From Chrysemys picta bellii (taxonomy: Eukaryota), in contig NC_088791.1 of assembly GCF_011386835.1 (NCBI RefSeq), positions 353,276,001-353,340,000 of the forward strand: a stretch of DNA of 64,000 nucleotides. The letters run 5' to 3'. Positions 2,111 through 32,218 of this stretch are shown here, piece by piece. The translations under genes and the position numbers were made by a program. How positions within the stretch are numbered: the stretch's first letter is position 1; every line of letters begins with the position of its first letter. The notes under the pieces were generated by a model that worked only from the letters and a program-made list of their open reading frames with translations, searched no databases and was not told the DNA's origin.

Positions 2111-2183
2111 TCTGAATCAGGACTCTGACTCAGGACATCTGGGTTTTATCCCCAACCCTGCTAGAGAACCTTGCTCCACCACC

Positions 2184-2403
2184 CATAGATCTGTGATCCC
2201 AGCAGCAAGAACAATACTAAAAATATCACCACAGTGAAACAAACCCAGGCCCCCCCGCACTCCAGCTCTCCTTTGCCCTCCCTGAGCCTCACGAAGCATG
2301 ACTGACAGCAGAGAGATCACCCTCACCTGCCCAGTGATCGCCGTCAACCCCCGCATCATCCGGGTCATGGTGAAAACCCCAACGGTGAAGGAGGCGTTTG
2401 TGG
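2184..2403 (+). pseudogene. UBQLN: Ubiquilin 5' fragment (partial duplicate of P1 5'UTR and first ~35 codons)
   Basis: Aligns to 14845-15064. ATG at 2298 gives MTDSREITLTCPVIAVNPRIIRVMVKTPTVKEAFV versus P1 MADSEEITLACPIIAANPRIIRVTVKTAKLKEEFV. It then joins LTR sequence. Confidence 0.85.
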
Positions 2404-2940
2404 GAAAGCCAAAGGGCCCTGCACCCCGATTCTGCAGACAGCCCTGACTCTCAGCCAGCGTGTAAATCATCAGGTTTATTTGTCGAAGGAACAGAATGTA
2501 GAACAGAACTTGTTAGCTCAGAAATCAGTGACCTTCAGCAAACTCCACCTTGGGAGGACTCCAGGCCGGACACCCCAGACTCCCCTCCCTCTGAGTCCCC
2601 CACAACAGATTGCCCAGCTTCCAGGGGACTGACTTCCAACACACCTGCTGCTCCTCCTCCTGGTCTTTGTCTCACTTCCTGGGCGAAGTGTCACCTGGTC
2701 GCATCCCCCTCCTGGGTCTCAGGTAACGAAGGGCGTCGGCCATCACTTATGTGCAGGCAGCTGGAGCCGCCTCACCTGGCCCTGAAGGCCTCAGCAAAAG
2801 TCACACACCCATATTCCTACCACCTAGGCATTGGTGCAGCACATGGGGAAACTGAGGCATACACAGTATTCATGCAAAACTGTAAGACTCAAATAGGCTC
2901 GCGTACAACATAATAAGGAGGAAAAACCCACTTTGTCAGA
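2404..2940 (-). mobile_element. Truncated LTR, same family as 27212-27905
   Basis: Its reverse complement aligns with 27212-27710, including the AATAAA region. The LTR 3' end is missing at the UBQLN junction. Confidence 0.75.
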
Positions 2941-3064
2941 GGTGTGTTCTAGCGCCTAAGGGCCCTGTAAACCGACCCAAAAGACCTGTGGTCCCTGATG
3001 CGCAGACAGTAATGGAGGCAGAGTCAAACAGGACGATGGCAGCCTTCTCTCCTGGCACCCTTTA

Positions 3065-3796
3065 CTATTGCTGCCAATCAAGTCTGTGCTGAGAAGACAA
3101 ATTCTCTGACTCAGCCCCTCGCTGACAGAAGCAATCAGGACAGCCCATCTGGTGGCTCCGGTCAGCACCTCTGACCGGGCCATTAAAAATCTGGATGGCG
3201 GTGCAGCAGGGTTAAGGTAGGCGCCCTGCCTACCCTGGCTCTGCGGAGCTTCCAGAAGCCACCAGCATTTCTGGCCACAGGCAGGGGGTGGCCAGGGGGA
3301 TCTCCGCGTTCTCCCCGCCCCAAGCGCCAGCTCCATAGCTCCCATTGGCCGGGAACCGTGGCCAATGGGAGCTGTGGGGTTGGCGCCTCTGGACTGGGAC
3401 AGTAGACACCAGGCAGAGCCTCCAGCCTGTGCCTCCGCCTAGGAGCCAGAGGGACATGTGGGCCGCTTCCAGGAGCCGTCTGAGGTAAGCGCAGCCCGCA
3501 CCCCAAAACTTGTCCTGTACCTCAACCCCCTACCTCAGCCCAGAGTCCCCTCCCATACTCCAAGCCCCTCATTCCTGGCCCCACCCCAGAGCCTGCACCC
3601 CCAGCCAGAGCCCTCACCTCCTTCTGCACCTCCACCCCCCTGCCATGACCGGTGAAAATGAGCGAGTGAGCAAGGGTGGGGGAGAGCGAGCAAGGGAGGG
3701 AGCAGGGATGGAGGGAGCAGGGGGCTGGGCCTCGGAGAAGCGGAGGGGCAGGGCAAGGGTGTTTAGTTCTCTGCAATCAGAAAGTTGGCATTCCTA
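3065..3796. mobile_element. GC-rich non-autonomous DNA transposon (hAT-like)
   Basis: Right end aagttggcattccta resembles a TAGGGTTGCCA-type TIR, and the internal cccattggccgggaaccgtggccaatggg palindrome is typical of such elements. The left boundary is approximate. Confidence 0.4.
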
Positions 3797-4472
3797 TCCG
3801 CCGCTCCTGTTTGGATGCTGAGCTTGAGTCATCCAGGGTCTGGATTTTCACAGCTGCTGAGCACCCGCCACTCCAGTGGCAGAGAGTGGGAGCTGCGAGA
3901 GCTCAGCACCTCTTGAAATCTTGGCTGAGGTGAGTCCCAGGTTTGGGGCTAGATAAAAGAGGCCTCCCAAATCAGCAGCTCACTTTTGGAAAGTGCCAGC
4001 TCCATTTGTGGTTAAACATCAATTCTCACAGTCCATAGGGGCTGTGCAGCAGGTCAACTCTGCTCCTTGGTGGAGGAACATGGGAACCACCAGACTGGAT
4101 CAGAGCTGGGTCTCCAGTAGCCTGTCTCCAGCAGTGGCCAGCACTAGATGCTTCAGAAGAAGCTGAGAGAATCTCTCATGAGGGGGATATGGGATAATCT
4201 TCCCCTCACACCCTGCGTCCCATCCTTATCTCTAACAGAGATTGGCTCAAACCCCGAGCCATGGGGGTCACTCTCCCTTCCAAAACGTGTGTGGTCACTA
4301 ACTCTGGTAACTCTTCTCTCCTGGCGCCTGGTCCCTTTTAAATCACCGCCGGAGCCTGGGCAGTGGAGGCCAGGCAGCACAGATGGGCTGGCTGCGGGAG
4401 GCCTCTTCTGGGGCCCGGAGTCGGCCCATGTACAGGTAAGAATTTATTATTATTATTTTCACCCCTGTAGGC

Positions 4473-4691
4473 CAGGGCCGGCTCCAGGGTTTTTGCGGCC
4501 CCAAGCGGCGAAAGAAAAAAACCACACCCGCGATCGGCGGCACCTCCACCGTGCCGCTTTCTTCTTCGGCAGCAGGCCCTTCCCTCCGAGAGGGACCGAG
4601 TGACCCGCCGCCGAAGAGCCCGACGTGCCGCCCCTTCCCCTGGGCCGCCCTATGCACCTGCTTGCTGGGCTGGTTCCTGGAGCTGGCCCTG
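4473..4691. mobile_element. hAT-type MITE
   Basis: TIRs CAGGGCCGGCTCCAG / CTGGAGCTGGCCCTG. 8-bp TSD ctgtaggc (4465-4472) / ctgtaggt (4692-4699). Confidence 0.85.
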
Positions 4692-5294
4692 CTGTAGGTA
4701 GGGCAATCCTGTCGGTTATAATGTTCCTTCATTTACCTCCAAGTGGTGTTGACTGCAGTTGTCTCTGATGGTTTTCTATTTATCATCTTGGGCTGGAGCA
4801 AGGGTGGACAACTGAGCCCGGCATTACATCCCCGGCTAACCAGGGTGGGGTGACGATGCCCTCCTGGAATGGCCATCACTTAGACACACTATGCCCTGGT
4901 GACTAACTTCTACTCCAAGTCCATAAAGCTCACTGTCAATATCAATATGTTATTCCTTAACTATTACCTGGACATGCCTTTTGCAATGGTTATAAAGCTT
5001 GATAAGTTACAAGCTTTCTGCACACACCTCACATGCTACTCTTTATGGGTAAATATTCTGTAAGACTTGTGTGTGGTGTAGTGAGTTTGCCAGGCCTGAG
5101 ATGAGATGTTGCAAAGAACAGGGAACTCTTTGCCAGGGTCTAAGTGTCACAAGGACCTTTCTAAATAATGTACAAAAGGAGAAATAATCGGAGCAAACGG
5201 GTGAAAGGAGCAAAGGGTTAATTCTCTGCTGCTCTTCACCACCTGAGCCAGTCACAGAGGCCAGGTCCCTCTGGCTCTGTGCTGGCTCTGAGCC

Positions 5295-5436: not shown

Positions 5437-6519
5437 CGTTTGCATGGAATGAATCTGTGAAGGGGCGAATGGAAACACATGAAATCTATGCAGTGTTTGA
5501 GCTGGGGTTGGATAGAATGGGGGTGCGTAACTCTGAGTGCAGGGGCAGGACGGGAGCCGGGGCACTGAGATAACACTCCTGTGACCGCGCTGAGGTTCGG
5601 TGTTAGGAAGAGGTCACCGGGTTACCCTGATCCACTTCCATGGACGTCACTGGGGGTCTTGCTGCTGACCTCAGTGGGCCCTGGACTGGGCCATTCTTGG
5701 TTAATGTGACTGTTCAGAGTAAATCTACTCAGGCCCTGTAATATTCTGCACCCGAAATCCTGAGGCCTTCACTCAGGCAACATTTCCATTAACGCCGTAA
5801 GGACCCCAGGACTGGGTCCGTTCAAGTTGGCAGAAATTAGGTGGTTTCAAGGAGCATAGCTGTGAATGTCTGAACTTTAGGACCCTGGAGCAGCCGATTA
5901 TAAGGGCTGCTTTGATAGGATGTCCCACCTACTGCAGCTGTAGTTCTCTGTAGCAGAGCTATGGGCAGGGCTGGGCTTGAAATGCTGCAGGGGCCCAGCT
6001 GCGCCGCTGGGGTGAGTTCTCCAAGATGCTCTGCGCCGACGTTCCACAAATGTGGCCACCGGCGGGTTTCCCTGCGGCCTCCACAGCTTCCTCAGTGGTG
6101 ATGGGGGGGAGGCAAAACATCAGTCCCTCTCCCCTCCCTCCCTGTTCCTCCTGGATGTGCCACCCTGCACAGCCCCTGGAGACAGGTGGGCACAGCGCTG
6201 CAGGAACACGGTGAATTCTCTCCCTGGGGGGGTGAGGACAATGAGGCTCGGGCTGCTGCCCTGGGGTGGTCGGGAGGTGGGCCCCAGTGGCAGGACTCAG
6301 TGGCTGCGTGGACCAGGGCTCCAGCCATGGACCTTCAGGTGCCAACACCCAGCTCTGCCTGCAGGTTTTGGACGCCGACCCCCAGCTCTGGACATGCGGC
6401 CCTGGCATTCGGCCATGCGGCTTCAGTTCGGGCTCCAACCCCTGGCCCACGGCGGCAGGCTCTAATTCCCATCTCTGGCCATGCAGCACTGGCCCCTGAG
6501 CCTGGCAGCAGCTGCTGGC

Positions 6520-7625
6520 CCCAGGCACTGACCCGCATGGCACCCGCTGGCCCCTGACACCAACCCCAGCTGCATGCTCCGACCCCCAGTCCTGGCTGCT
6601 GGCCCCAGGCTCCGACCCCCATGGCACCCGCTGGCCCCGGACACCAACCCCAGCTGCATGCTCCGACCCCCAGTCCTGGCTGCTGGCCCCAGGCTCCGAC
6701 CCCCATGGCACCCGCTGGCCCCGGACACCAACCCCAGCCGCATGCTGCGACCCCCAGTCCTGGCTGCTGGCCCCAGGCTCTGACCCCCATGGCACCCGCT
6801 GGCCCCAGACACCAACCCCAGCCGCATGCTGCGACCCCCAGTCCTGGCTGCTGGCCCCAGGCTCCGACCCCCATGGCACCCGCTGGCCCCAGACACCAAC
6901 CCCAGCCGCATGCTGTGACCCCCAGTCCTGGCTGCTGGCCCCAGGCTCAGACCCCCATGGCACCCGCTGGCCCCGGACACCAACCCCAGCTGCATGCTGC
7001 GACCCCCAGTCCTGGCTGCTGGCCCCAGGCTCTGACCCCCATGGCACCCGCTGGCCCCAGACACCAACCCCAGCTGCATGCTCCGACCCCCAGTCCTGGC
7101 TGCTGGCCCCAGGCTCTGACCCCCATGGCACCCGCTGGCTCCGGACACCAACCCCAGCTGCATGCTCCGACCCCCAGTCCTGGCTGCTGGCCCCAGGCAC
7201 TGACCCCCATGGCACCCGCTGGCCCCAGACACCAACCCCAGCTGCATGCTCCGACCCCCAGTCCTGGCTGCTGGCCCAGGCTCCGACCCCCATGGCACCC
7301 GCTGGCCCCGGACACCAACCCCAGCTGCATGCTCCGACCCCCAGTCCTGGCTGCTGGCCCCAGGCACTGACCCCGCATGGCACCCGCTGGCCCCAGACAC
7401 CAACCCCAGCTGCATGCTCCGACCCCCAGTCCTGGCTGCTGGCCCAGGCACTGACCCCCATGGCACCCGCTGGCCCCAGACACCAACCCCAGCTGCATGC
7501 TCCGACCCCCAGTCCTGGCTGCTGGCCCAGGCTCCGACCCCCATGGCACCCGCTGGCCCCGGACACCAACCCCAGCCGCATGCTGCGACCCCCGGTCCTG
7601 GCTGCTGGCCCCAGGCACTGACCCC
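6520..7625. repeat. GC-rich minisatellite, 84-bp unit, about 13 copies
   Basis: atggcacccgctggcccc recurs at 6621, 6705, 6789, 6873, 6957, 7041, 7125 and 7209 (period 84), then with 83-85 bp spacing. Confidence 0.95.
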
Positions 7626-7892
7626 CAGCCTTGGGTGTGCAGCAGCAGGCATTGGCCCCAGGATCCGATCCCCGGGCACGTGGCAGTAGCCGCTGATCCC
7701 CGGACCCGGGTATGCGCCGATCCCCGGACCCGGGTGTGCGCCGATCCCCGGGAGCGCAGCAGCAGGTGCTGGGTTCAGCTCCATGGCGGCGGGCATTGAC
7801 CCCTGGTTCTGGCCACGCAGCCCCGGACTCCAGCACTCAGCTCCAGGCTCTGGCCACATGGCAGCGGGCACTGGCTCTGGGCTCCAACTCCC

Positions 7893-8628
7893 TGTTAGGA
7901 TATAGATATTCAGGCCTGTCTGCAAAGGCCTAGACTTTATGAATTTAGGTGTATTCTTATCACGTAGCTAATTATAGAGGTATAAAAGAAAGAATCAAAA
8001 TCACTGTCTGCCGGTGTAAGGGCCTTTTCTCACTGTGACAGTCTGAGGCCCGGTTCTTAGGCGAAGGCCTTGGGCTAAGGAGCAGAGGTAGCCATAAACT
8101 GGGAAGTGAACGGTCACATCCTCACATCCCAACTACTCACATGGAAATAAGGTGCTAAGGGGCTGTTAGGAACACAATCCTGTCCTGATATTCCTATCTC
8201 CTCCAGAGAAAGGGAAAAGCCTAGAAGATGTAAAAGGAAATTTCGTTTGATAGTTTTCTGTCTGGTAAGAACTCAATTATCAGTAGACACAGCTGGGAAT
8301 CCCTTATGTCTGTCTAGATGTAGTTGTGAAATCCTCACTTCTGCATTGTTTTGTCATTATAGCTCCCACTTTGCTATTGTTTATTTGCATGGTCTCGGTC
8401 TGGTTCTGTGATTGTTTCTGGCTGCTGTATAATTAAGTTTGCCGGGTGCAAACTAATTAAGGTGGTGGGATATAATTGGTTAGCTAATCAGTAAGTTGGG
8501 ATTTGAAAATAAGGAAAAAGGAACTTGGATTTAAGCTTGCTGGAAGTTCACCCCAATAAACATCGAATTGTTTGCACCTTTGGACTTCGGGTAGGGAAGT
8601 GGGAGGGTGAAGGAATAAGCCCCTAACA
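7893..8628. mobile_element. Solo LTR
   Basis: TGTTAGG...CCTAACA termini and a 5-bp TSD CTCCC (7888-7892 and 8629-8633). Confidence 0.9.
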
Positions 8629-9893: not shown

Positions 9894-10856
9894 ATGCCAG
9901 CTGACAATCACACCTTTTTTGACCCTGTAACTTACATCCTGACCGGCATCCCAGGCATGGAAGAGACTCAGGTGTGGCTCTCCATCCCCTTCTGTCTGAT
10001 GTACATTGTGGCGCTTTTTGGGAACTCTCTCCTACTATTCATCATACTAACAGAACGAAGCCTCCATGAGCCCATGTATCTTTTCCTGTCCATGCTGGCC
10101 GCTGCTGATCTGCTGTTATCTACCACTACAGTGCCCAAGATGCTGGCTGTATTCTGGTTTAGAGTGGGGGACATTTCTTTTGCTTCCTGCCTGACCCAGA
10201 TGTTCTTCATCCATGTCATTTTTATTGCCGAGTCGGCCATCCTGCTGGCCATGGCGTTTGATCGGTATGTTGCCATCTGCGACCCCCTGAGATACACCAT
10301 CATGCTAACCAAGTCTGTGATTGGGAAGATGGGGCTGGCAGCTGTCACGAGAAGTTTCTGTATAATTTTCCCTGTCATCTTTCTCGTGAAGCGTCTGAAG
10401 TTCTGCAGAACCAACCTCCTGCCTCACACCTATTGTGAGCACATGGGCATAGCCCGGCTCGCCTGCGACGACATCACAGTCAACATCTGGTATGGCCTAG
10501 CTGTGGCTATTTTAGCAATCGGCTTGGATGCTGTGCTCATTGCTGTATCTTATGGACTGATCCTCAGGGCCGTCTTCCAGCTCCCATCCAAGGCCGCCCG
10601 GCTCAAGGCTCTCCGCACCTGCGGCTCCCACCTCTGTGTTATTCTAATGTTCTACACACCGGCCTTTTTCTCCTTTTTTGCACACCGGTTTGGCCACAAC
10701 ATCCCAGGCTATATTCATATCCTACTGGCCAACCTCTATGTGCTCATTCCGCCCATGTTAAACCCCATCGTTTATGGGGTGAGAACAAAAGAGATCCTGA
10801 AACGGGTGATCAATGTGTTTTATCGATGCTGCAGCAGAAGCTCCCTGCTGAGCTAA
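9894..10856 (+). CDS. OR52: Class I olfactory receptor, family 52-like, 320 aa, intact
   Basis: Single-exon 7TM ORF with LHEPMYLFL, MAFDRYVAICDPLRY, HTYCEHMGIARLAC, KALRTCGSH and PPMLNPIVYGVRTKEI. The symbol is family level only. A splice acceptor (ttttctcttttgctgttag) ends at 9853. Confidence 0.95.
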   Translation: MPADNHTFFDPVTYILTGIPGMEETQVWLSIPFCLMYIVALFGNSLLLFIILTERSLHEPMYLFLSMLAAADLLLSTTTVPKMLAVFWFRVGDISFASCLTQMFFIHVIFIAESAILLAMAFDRYVAICDPLRYTIMLTKSVIGKMGLAAVTRSFCIIFPVIFLVKRLKFCRTNLLPHTYCEHMGIARLACDDITVNIWYGLAVAILAIGLDAVLIAVSYGLILRAVFQLPSKAARLKALRTCGSHLCVILMFYTPAFFSFFAHRFGHNIPGYIHILLANLYVLIPPMLNPIVYGVRTKEILKRVINVFYRCCSRSSLLS

Positions 10857-14638: not shown

Positions 14639-14683
14639 CCAATGCCATCGCTGCTCACAAAGATGTCATCAGTGATGTCACAG
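14639..14683 (+). promoter_or_regulatory. Conserved UBQLN upstream module (CCAAT plus tandem CRE-like sites), P1 copy
   Basis: CCAATgccatcgct-gctcacaaaGATGTCAtcagTGATGTCAcag. It aligns without gaps to 21137-21181 and to the reverse complement of 32174-32218. Confidence 0.65.
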
Positions 14684-14958
14684 TCAGCCCAGCCGTCAGG
14701 CAGAGCGGTGAACTGCTGGAGAAGCAGGAGGGAGCTGGTGGCCCGGGAGTGGGGAAGTGGGGGCTGGTATGCATGATTTGGGCCTGGATTCTGGCATTAC
14801 ACAGGGCAGGGGGAGGTCGGTTCCCTTCTCCTGCTCCCCCCGCCCGTAGATCTGTGATCACAGCAGCAAGAACAAGACCAAGACTATCACCATAGTTAAG
14901 GAAACCCAGCTCCCCCCGCACTCCGGCTCTCCTCGGCCCTCCCTGAGCCTCACGAAGC

Positions 14959-21136: not shown

Positions 21137-21181
21137 CCAATGCCTTGTTTGCTTACTGTGATGTCAGCAGTGATGTCACAG
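21137..21181 (+). promoter_or_regulatory. Conserved UBQLN upstream module, P2 copy
   Basis: CCAATgccttgttt-gcttactgTGATGTCAgcagTGATGTCAcag. Confidence 0.65.
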
Positions 21182-21520
21182 GGCCCCGGGACCGGCAGGG
21201 TAGAAATTCTGCATGGGCAGGCGGCATCAGCAGCAGAAAGACCATGAGGGAACCCGCCAGGTGGTGAGTGAACCGAGGAGCAGGCCAACATCTGGCTGGA
21301 ATGTGCGCTCTGGCTTTGGCTTCCAGCAGTACCACGGGGAGAGCAGACCAATTCCCCCTTCCCACCACTCCGCCCCGGAAGCCCGTAACGATAGCGGCAA
21401 CAACGACCACCGCCGTACATCAGCCGAAAGGAATTGTCCCCCGTCACGTCCCATCTCCTTCTCCTGGTGCCTCTGCTCCCTGAGGAAGAACCAACGCGGA
21501 GCTCCTGGATCCCGGTCACC

Positions 21521-32010: not shown

Positions 32011-32173
32011 GGCTAACACGATGCTGGTCCCTTCCCGAAAAGCAGAGAGACCAGAGACTTAGAGGGGCTGGGGATGTCTAGGGACCAAATCCAGAGCACT
32101 CATGTCAGCTGGTGCGCCGCCCCATGCTGCTCCCCTGCTCACAGCTTCCTAACCTCCTGGCTTGCCCGGTGGA

Positions 32174-32218
32174 CTGTGACATCCCTGCTGATGTCACTGT
32201 GAGCAAGAAACCACATGG
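32174..32218 (-). promoter_or_regulatory. Conserved UBQLN upstream module, P3 copy
   Basis: Minus strand reads ccatgtggtttctt-gctcacagTGACATCAgcagGGATGTCAcag. Confidence 0.6.

Follow-up and report, generated by a model that had tools for sequence, protein, structure and literature searches.

Four copies of a 31-nt non-coding block, each with two CRE-like sites, lie in sense orientation upstream of the four ubiquilin genes in the 64 000-nt stretch of Chrysemys picta bellii DNA analysed here (the window), and this block is very probably a selected proximal promoter element. More specifically, it is probably the element that forms the proximal or core part of the promoter in the intronless, testis-type genes of the UBQLNL/UBQLN3 cluster. 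The type of element is familiar; what is new is that the orthologous module was found in sauropsids and before rodent UBQLN3. The original prediction was of an ancient promoter module inherited with each gene copy, and the orthologous copies across sauropsids and in rodent UBQLN3 bear this out and make the module older than had been proposed, with an age of ~300 My if the taxa that share it are dated by textbook divergence times. As judged from the alignments, the module has been under purifying selection since the amniote ancestor.

The window contains four intact intronless ubiquilin ORFs amid class-I olfactory receptor genes, and UBL and UBQLN1/STI1 domains are present in the products of all four. 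P1 (14959..16506, + strand; 515 aa) encodes a ubiquilin without a UBA domain and is UBQLNL-type by synteny and in a quick tree, whilst P2 (21521..23320, + strand; 599 aa) is UBQLN3-type by synteny and by its shared promoter and leader. P3 (30322..32010, − strand; 562 aa) is sister to the sauropsid P2-type genes, and P4 (48913..50637, − strand; 574 aa) is a recent duplicate of P3, the two proteins being 94% identical and the two genes also having an upstream CR1 tail in common. A P1-like fragment at ~2180–2402 (+ strand), which keeps the proximal 5′UTR and the 35 initial codons with 71% identity to P1, is a truncated duplicate; neither a module nor any other ORF goes with it, and its upstream DNA is unrelated. 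The GC-richest 2 kb of the window (6001–8000, GC 0.685) contains a 625-codon ORF (5959–7836, − strand) without a Pfam match, which may be an artefact of base composition or may mark a CpG island.

When the 600 nt upstream of P1, P2 and P3 were compared, the 31-nt block was the top gap-free three-way 31-mer, with 23/31 invariant columns where 60 null resamplings averaged 13.1 and never exceeded 15, and the paralogue alignment had only one other standout, a weaker second block ~90–120 nt downstream. A degenerate 31-nt pattern, allowing up to three mismatches, gave exactly four matches in the window, with none expected in shuffled sequence. The P1 module (14653..14683, + strand) has a distal GATGTCA at 14662–14668 and a proximal GATGTCA at 14674–14680, then CAG, and the P2 module (21151..21181, + strand) includes a 26-nt near-palindromic core at 21156–21181. 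The P3 module (32174..32204, − strand) has TGACATCA as its distal and GGATGTCAC as its proximal site, and the module of its recent duplicate P4 (50802..50832, − strand) has the same sequence. All are in sense, and the module ends 276 (P1), 340 (P2), 164 (P3) and 165 nt (P4) before the ATG. These four copies, with nothing else in the window matching, are those originally predicted, and the measured distances (164–340 nt) agree with the predicted 165–340 bp; the module has likewise been kept, as had been claimed, beside highly diverged proteins, P1, P2 and P3 being only 36–41% identical.

Two parts of the original prediction stood only partially. All four ubiquilin genes do carry a copy of the module, but P3 and P4 stem from one recent duplication, so that the independent paralogues number three and the evidence within the window is three-fold rather than four-fold. 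Similarly, the CCAAT box claimed as part of the module does begin 14 nt before the 31-nt block at turtle P1 (14639–14643, + strand) and P2 (21137–21141, + strand), with CCATG occupying this position in P3/P4, but it is missing from every non-turtle orthologue; a CCAAT/NF-Y box was rejected as a conserved component since it does not occur in alligator, emu, other birds, squamates or rodents. The 10-mer GATGTCACAG also occurs at 36642, 44173 and 55466 (− strand), inside three ORFs of ~314 codons and at corresponding offsets within them. A scan of one of the three showed it to be an olfactory receptor, and the extra matches appear unrelated to the promoter module.

Aligning the upstream regions across amniotes had been suggested as a check, and such a comparison found the module in a crocodilian, birds, squamates, a tortoise and rodents. 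A search with the P2 protein recovered orthologues from across the turtles, birds, crocodilians and squamates, the genomic loci of which were then compared; rodent ubiquilin-3 proteins were reached by a representative search and cluster look-up (a second look-up gave mostly invertebrate ubiquilins), and the mammals sampled were two rodents, Arvicanthis and gundi. The orthologous modules were always in sense, 180–661 nt before the ATG. In the alligator the module precedes both the 515-aa P1 orthologue and the P2 orthologue, and in the emu both the P2 orthologue and a P1-type ORF. This emu ORF of P1/UBQLNL type (493 codons, from 6068 of locus L002 onward, + strand) is apparently unannotated and has its own module at 5787–5812. 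Further copies were found in two more birds, the corn snake and another lizard, and before the tortoise P3 orthologue, and the wall lizard Podarcis has a triple site before its P1-type gene and a GG/CC-centred pair before its P2 orthologue. In rodents, UBQLN3 has the two-site module 460 nt (Arvicanthis) and 661 nt (gundi) before the ATG, and UBQLNL has just one TGACATCAC- or TGTCATCAC-type site plus an AP-1 site.

The looser pattern GAnnTCA-N5-GAnnTCA (at most one mismatch) matched in 16/20 upstream regions, always in sense, with a single match in 15 of those regions and two overlapping matches in the Podarcis triple site (copy A). Its density upstream of the genes was 1.27 per kb, against no more than 0.085 per kb elsewhere (434 kb of strand sequence), an enrichment upstream of ubiquilin genes of at least 15-fold, and many of the matches outside the upstream regions were the same palindromic modules read on the opposite strand. 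Among the UBQLN3-type upstream regions (nine aligned) there was no conservation upstream of the module.

The module consists of two 8-bp TGA-NN-TCA sites whose centres are 12 bp apart. Across 15 aligned instances the invariant positions are GA..TCA, five bases and GA..TCA.A, the GA and TCA arms being fixed in both sites, whilst the site centres vary between TG, CA, GG, CC and GA and the spacer varies too; the canonical CG centre occurs in none of the sampled copies. TGA/TCA half-site arms at the 2-nt spacing of a CRE are therefore present, with the leading T of the proximal site not invariant, this base being G or C in P3/P4 as well as in some copies of the P1 type. The sole invariant island upstream of P1-type genes is made up of the proximal site and AGT. 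Symmetric CTG/CAG outer flanks enclose a variable spacer in the P2-type copies of turtle, emu, Podarcis, snake and lizard and in gundi, and a CACAG extension is kept that lies outside any CRE consensus. The first site occurs in either orientation among different copies, as would be expected of a dimer on double-stranded DNA but not of an RNA signal.

At the orthologous distal site turtle P2 has TGATGTCA where alligator, emu and another bird have TGACATCA, and TGAGGTCA occurs in the emu and gundi copies. The suggestion that such forms are deamination products of a CRE palindrome gained support, as TG and CA interchange among these orthologues and TGATGTCA is a published CRE variant arising by CpG deamination (PMC1796609). 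This TG-variant CRE, derived from methylated CpG, is functional with lower affinity, shows a positional bias towards −1 to −150 in both orientations, and is often interchanged with the CG and CA forms in orthologues (PMC1796609). TG in the turtle and CA in archosaurs is the outcome to be expected if an ancestral CG decayed independently, and both sites probably descend from the canonical TGACGTCA via decay of methylated CpG. Two other readings of the sites, as targets of TALE-homeodomain proteins (core TGTCA) or of nuclear receptors (core AGGTCA), were discarded because neither core is present in all copies.

Downstream of the module, the nine aligned UBQLN3-type sequences share two invariant islands. 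The first contains the ATG of a short upstream ORF (uORF1), which is invariant in all nine and, in 8/8 UBQLN3-type genes measured, begins +59 to +66 nt after the module and opens a frame of 7–8 codons. The uORF consists of seven codons plus TGA in every sauropsid examined and eight codons plus TAA in both rodents, with the peptides MREPARW in the turtle (P2, 21244..21267, + strand), MKEPARL in squamates and MRAVWSPA in Arvicanthis; the alligator copy is at 10033–10056 of locus L001, and the lizard contigs L010 and L014 also carry uORF1. P3 (32105..32125, − strand) has a version of six codons plus TGA at the same place as in P2-type genes, and P4 (50732..50752, − strand) likewise has six codons plus TGA. 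Turtle P1 and tortoise P3 no longer have the uORF1 ATG, but a uORF is present at this position in the P1 orthologues of emu and alligator. An upstream ATG with an in-frame stop is thus conserved in position across species.

The second leader block, island 3, lies at +114 to +123 and is common to paralogues and amniotes. At P2 (21284..21320, + strand) it reads CAACATCTGGCTGG-ATG-TGCGCTCTGG, with a second upstream ATG at 21301, and weaker equivalents are found at P1 (14762..14795, + strand, with upstream ATGs at 14769 and 14773) and at P3 (~32085–32112, − strand). Besides the upstream ATG, island 3 holds an E-box-like CATCTG. We considered GTGAGC and GGTATG as 5′UTR splice donors in sauropsids and rejected them, since the TGA serves to terminate the uORF and the mRNA-like contig of the lizard shows no splicing; a donor in the second island likewise failed because its GT is missing in turtle P2, Podarcis and one bird (L012). 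In rodents, island 3 may be the splice donor of exon 1, with a candidate acceptor (...ccccacag) just before the ATG.

The start of transcription was bracketed using two mRNA-like lizard contigs, NCBI gene models and the limits of conservation. The Logan contigs L010 and L011, from one lizard study, cover just the gene and end 13–17 nt after an ACTAAA hexamer, whereas the homologous genomic DNA of another lizard (L014) continues past this end point, so that L010 and L011 look mRNA-derived. The longer of the two, L010, is unspliced and contains uORF1 and island 3; it begins 42 nt before the uORF1 ATG, ~17 nt after the position of the module, and lacks the module itself. The Logan contigs L005–L007, L012 and L014 are genomic DNA and uninformative on the start site. 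In the NCBI models of Mauremys and alligator the CDS begins at an ATG downstream of the module, at a distance that in alligator measures 31 nt, and the transcript models must therefore reach at least that far. These models (alligator, 680 aa, L001 10001–10276; Mauremys, 687 aa) have ~90 extra N-terminal residues read through the leader, and the extensions are likely annotation artefacts: the extended frame is not conserved, and in Chrysemys this upstream ATG and the main ORF are in different frames. No conserved TATA box was found. Together these lines bracket the transcription start, and they place the module either at it or a short way upstream. The start could fall inside the proximal site, where GTCACA matches a loose initiator consensus; a start upstream of the module is less likely.

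The genomic neighbourhood and the leader also bear on the history of the genes. UBQLNL followed by UBQLN3 on one strand, 6–8 kb apart and beside olfactory receptor genes, is the arrangement in rodents, turtle, alligator, emu, Podarcis and snake (the same-strand rodent genes being at 2335–4134 and 10001–11980 of L008 and at 3422–5254 and 10001–11956 of L009). A quick tree with SH-aLRT support placed P1-type genes with rodent UBQLNL (84) and P3 as sister to the sauropsid P2-type genes (94), the placement of rodent UBQLN3 being not resolved. According to a previous study, UBQLN3, UBQLNL and UBQLN5 are mammal-specific and the sauropsid genes form a separate UBQLN6 (Marin, 2014; PMC4230246). The common synteny, the shared architecture of promoter, uORF and island 3, and the quick tree together point to an early-amniote origin of UBQLNL and UBQLN3; this argues, contrary to the mammal-specific scenario, that the two genes would have arisen before the mammal–sauropsid split, an origin for which the module adds non-coding evidence.

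With respect to the protein that reads the module, the TGA-NN-TCA arms at CRE spacing, the occurrence in either orientation and the G...C outer flanks point to bZIP dimers of the CREB/CREM/ATF type, and the chances that this class is the reader seem evenly balanced. Under this proposal two CREB/CREM/ATF-class dimers would occupy adjacent sites of a TATA-less promoter and fix initiation at the module or within ~20–60 nt downstream of it. The transcript would then begin with a leader containing the 7–8 codon uORF and further upstream ATGs, which would plausibly reduce or postpone translation, as often happens with spermatid mRNAs. The mammalian members of the family are post-meiotic and testis-specific (PMC4230246), and from them we infer a putative spermatid specificity of the reptile genes. 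In round spermatids only 13% of CREM-bound loci have a perfect CRE, a TATA box is unnecessary and CREM occupies far more promoters than it regulates (PMC3091680). The mouse somatic paralogue Ubqln1 has a CREM/CREB-bound canonical TGACGTCA at −273 in a ChIP-seq table (PMC3091680). Ubqln1 is also present in Kosir Table S4, which gives mouse genes that are CREM-bound and deregulated in the Crem knockout, and Ubqln3 and Ubqlnl are not. Ubqln3 is likewise not among the matches listed for larger mouse CREM ChIP and expression tables. The freely drifting centres and the unfixed leading T of the proximal site count against a simple CREM reading; such drift is odd for a classical CREB/CREM site, the central dinucleotide of which matters for CREB affinity.

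These same features lend some weight to a promoter element read by a factor other than CREM, CREB or ATF1, such as ATF2/ATF7-JUN, another germ-cell bZIP protein or a complex on the whole palindrome, a reading that we regard as unlikely but the strongest of the alternatives. The centres are free while the arms and outer flanks are fixed, the CTG/CAG flanks are symmetric in the sauropsid P2-type copies and gundi, the CACAG extension goes past the CRE consensus, and Ubqln3 is missing from the listed entries of the CREM target tables; the c-jun jun1 site, a target of ATF2/ATF7-JUN, is TGACATCA. In the whole-palindrome version (CTGTGA..TCA-N4-TGA..TCACAG) the proximal site could double as the initiator. 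Against another factor, TGA-NN-TCA with its 2-nt spacing is the signature of CRE-type bZIP proteins, besides which we know of no factor with this specificity, and TG-variant and one-mismatch CREs function and are bound in spermatids (PMC1796609, PMC3091680). A still more doubtful elaboration would see in the 26-bp near-palindrome (CTGTGAnnTCA-N4-TGAnnTCACAG) not a decayed CREM site but a core promoter cassette that lacks CpG and is insensitive to methylation. Its initiator would lie within the proximal site, another germ-cell factor would read it, and it would have been held in fixed phase with the 7–8 codon uORF since the amniote ancestor. If true, module and uORF would be one unit coupling transcription and translation for the testis ubiquilins.

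Two palindromic sites 12 nt apart also form an inverted repeat, and the module might therefore be transcribed and act as an RNA or DNA hairpin in the 5′ leader (stem of ~8–11 bp, loop of 4 nt), for example in translational control. Several copies do fold, with z-scores of −0.9 to −2.7, perfect inverted repeats of 8–11 bp are found in alligator B, bird L012, Podarcis A and B and P3, and the GG/CC centres of Podarcis B pair with each other. The covariation score slightly exceeded that of shuffled alignments (reached by 8/500), but the pairing of 83.8% compares with 81.9% in the shuffles and follows from each site being palindromic in itself, changes on both sides occur in only 3 cells, and about half of the copies have central mismatches, so that base pairs backed by covariation were not found. 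The mRNA-like contig L010 lacks the module, and no Rfam family matched anywhere in the window. We consider a hairpin very improbable. That the paralogues resemble each other through recent gene conversion or a shared repeat rather than selection is scarcely credible and already largely refuted: the modules of P3 and P4 are indeed identical, these genes being recent duplicates, and a CR1 tail lies ~95 nt upstream of both modules, but the CR1 element stops before the module, the lineage-specific flanks of each paralogue are common to its alligator, emu and squamate orthologues, conservation is confined to 26–31 nt where conversion tracts would run longer, no dispersed repeat of the kind that would have spoken against the original prediction appeared in the sequence covered, the module having four copies in the window and occurring there, in the fetched loci and in the 434 kb of strand sequence solely upstream of ubiquilin genes, and the pattern of conservation across species and paralogues rules out chance, a dispersed repeat and recent conversion alike.

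A proximal promoter element carrying two CRE-like sites is thus our preferred reading. Together with the uORF and the leader block, these sites form a compact cis-regulatory unit of ~150 nt that has outlasted nearly all protein similarity among the fast-evolving testis ubiquilins, and the centre variants TG, CA, GG, CC and GA provide a natural series on what a spermatid CRE-like box requires. As a mechanism class, a conserved proximal bZIP site is ordinary; what is distinctive is the age of the module, its rigid 12-bp phasing and the fixed distance to the uORF.

Examples of CREM-tau-driven spermatid promoters are that of calspermin, which has two CREs, and that of testis ACE, which contains TGAGGTCA. 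The ubiquilin promoters resemble such promoters in being TATA-less with one or two imperfect CREs near the probable start, and differ from them in that CREM is a candidate reader in ubiquilin-3-type genes. With the TG-variant CRE (PMC1796609) the module shares the same 8-mers, TGATGTCA and TGACATCA, and the exchange of TG and CA forms between orthologues, whereas the ubiquilin module has two sites locked 12 bp apart with outer flanks kept, and the GG, CC and GA centres of some copies were not treated as CREs in that survey (PMC1796609). Like other conserved short uORFs in 5′ leaders, the ubiquilin uORF has an invariant ATG, an in-frame stop 7–8 codons on and a fixed position; unlike them, it is too short for dN/dS, and neither turtle P1 nor tortoise P3 retains it. 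The turtle genes have in common with the mammalian testis ubiquilin cluster an intronless coding region and an OR51/52 olfactory receptor neighbourhood (PMC4230246). Finally, rodent UBQLN3 has the module, uORF and island 3 in common with sauropsid P2-type genes, and differs in that its island 3 may be an exon-1 donor whereas the lizard mRNA-like contig is unspliced.
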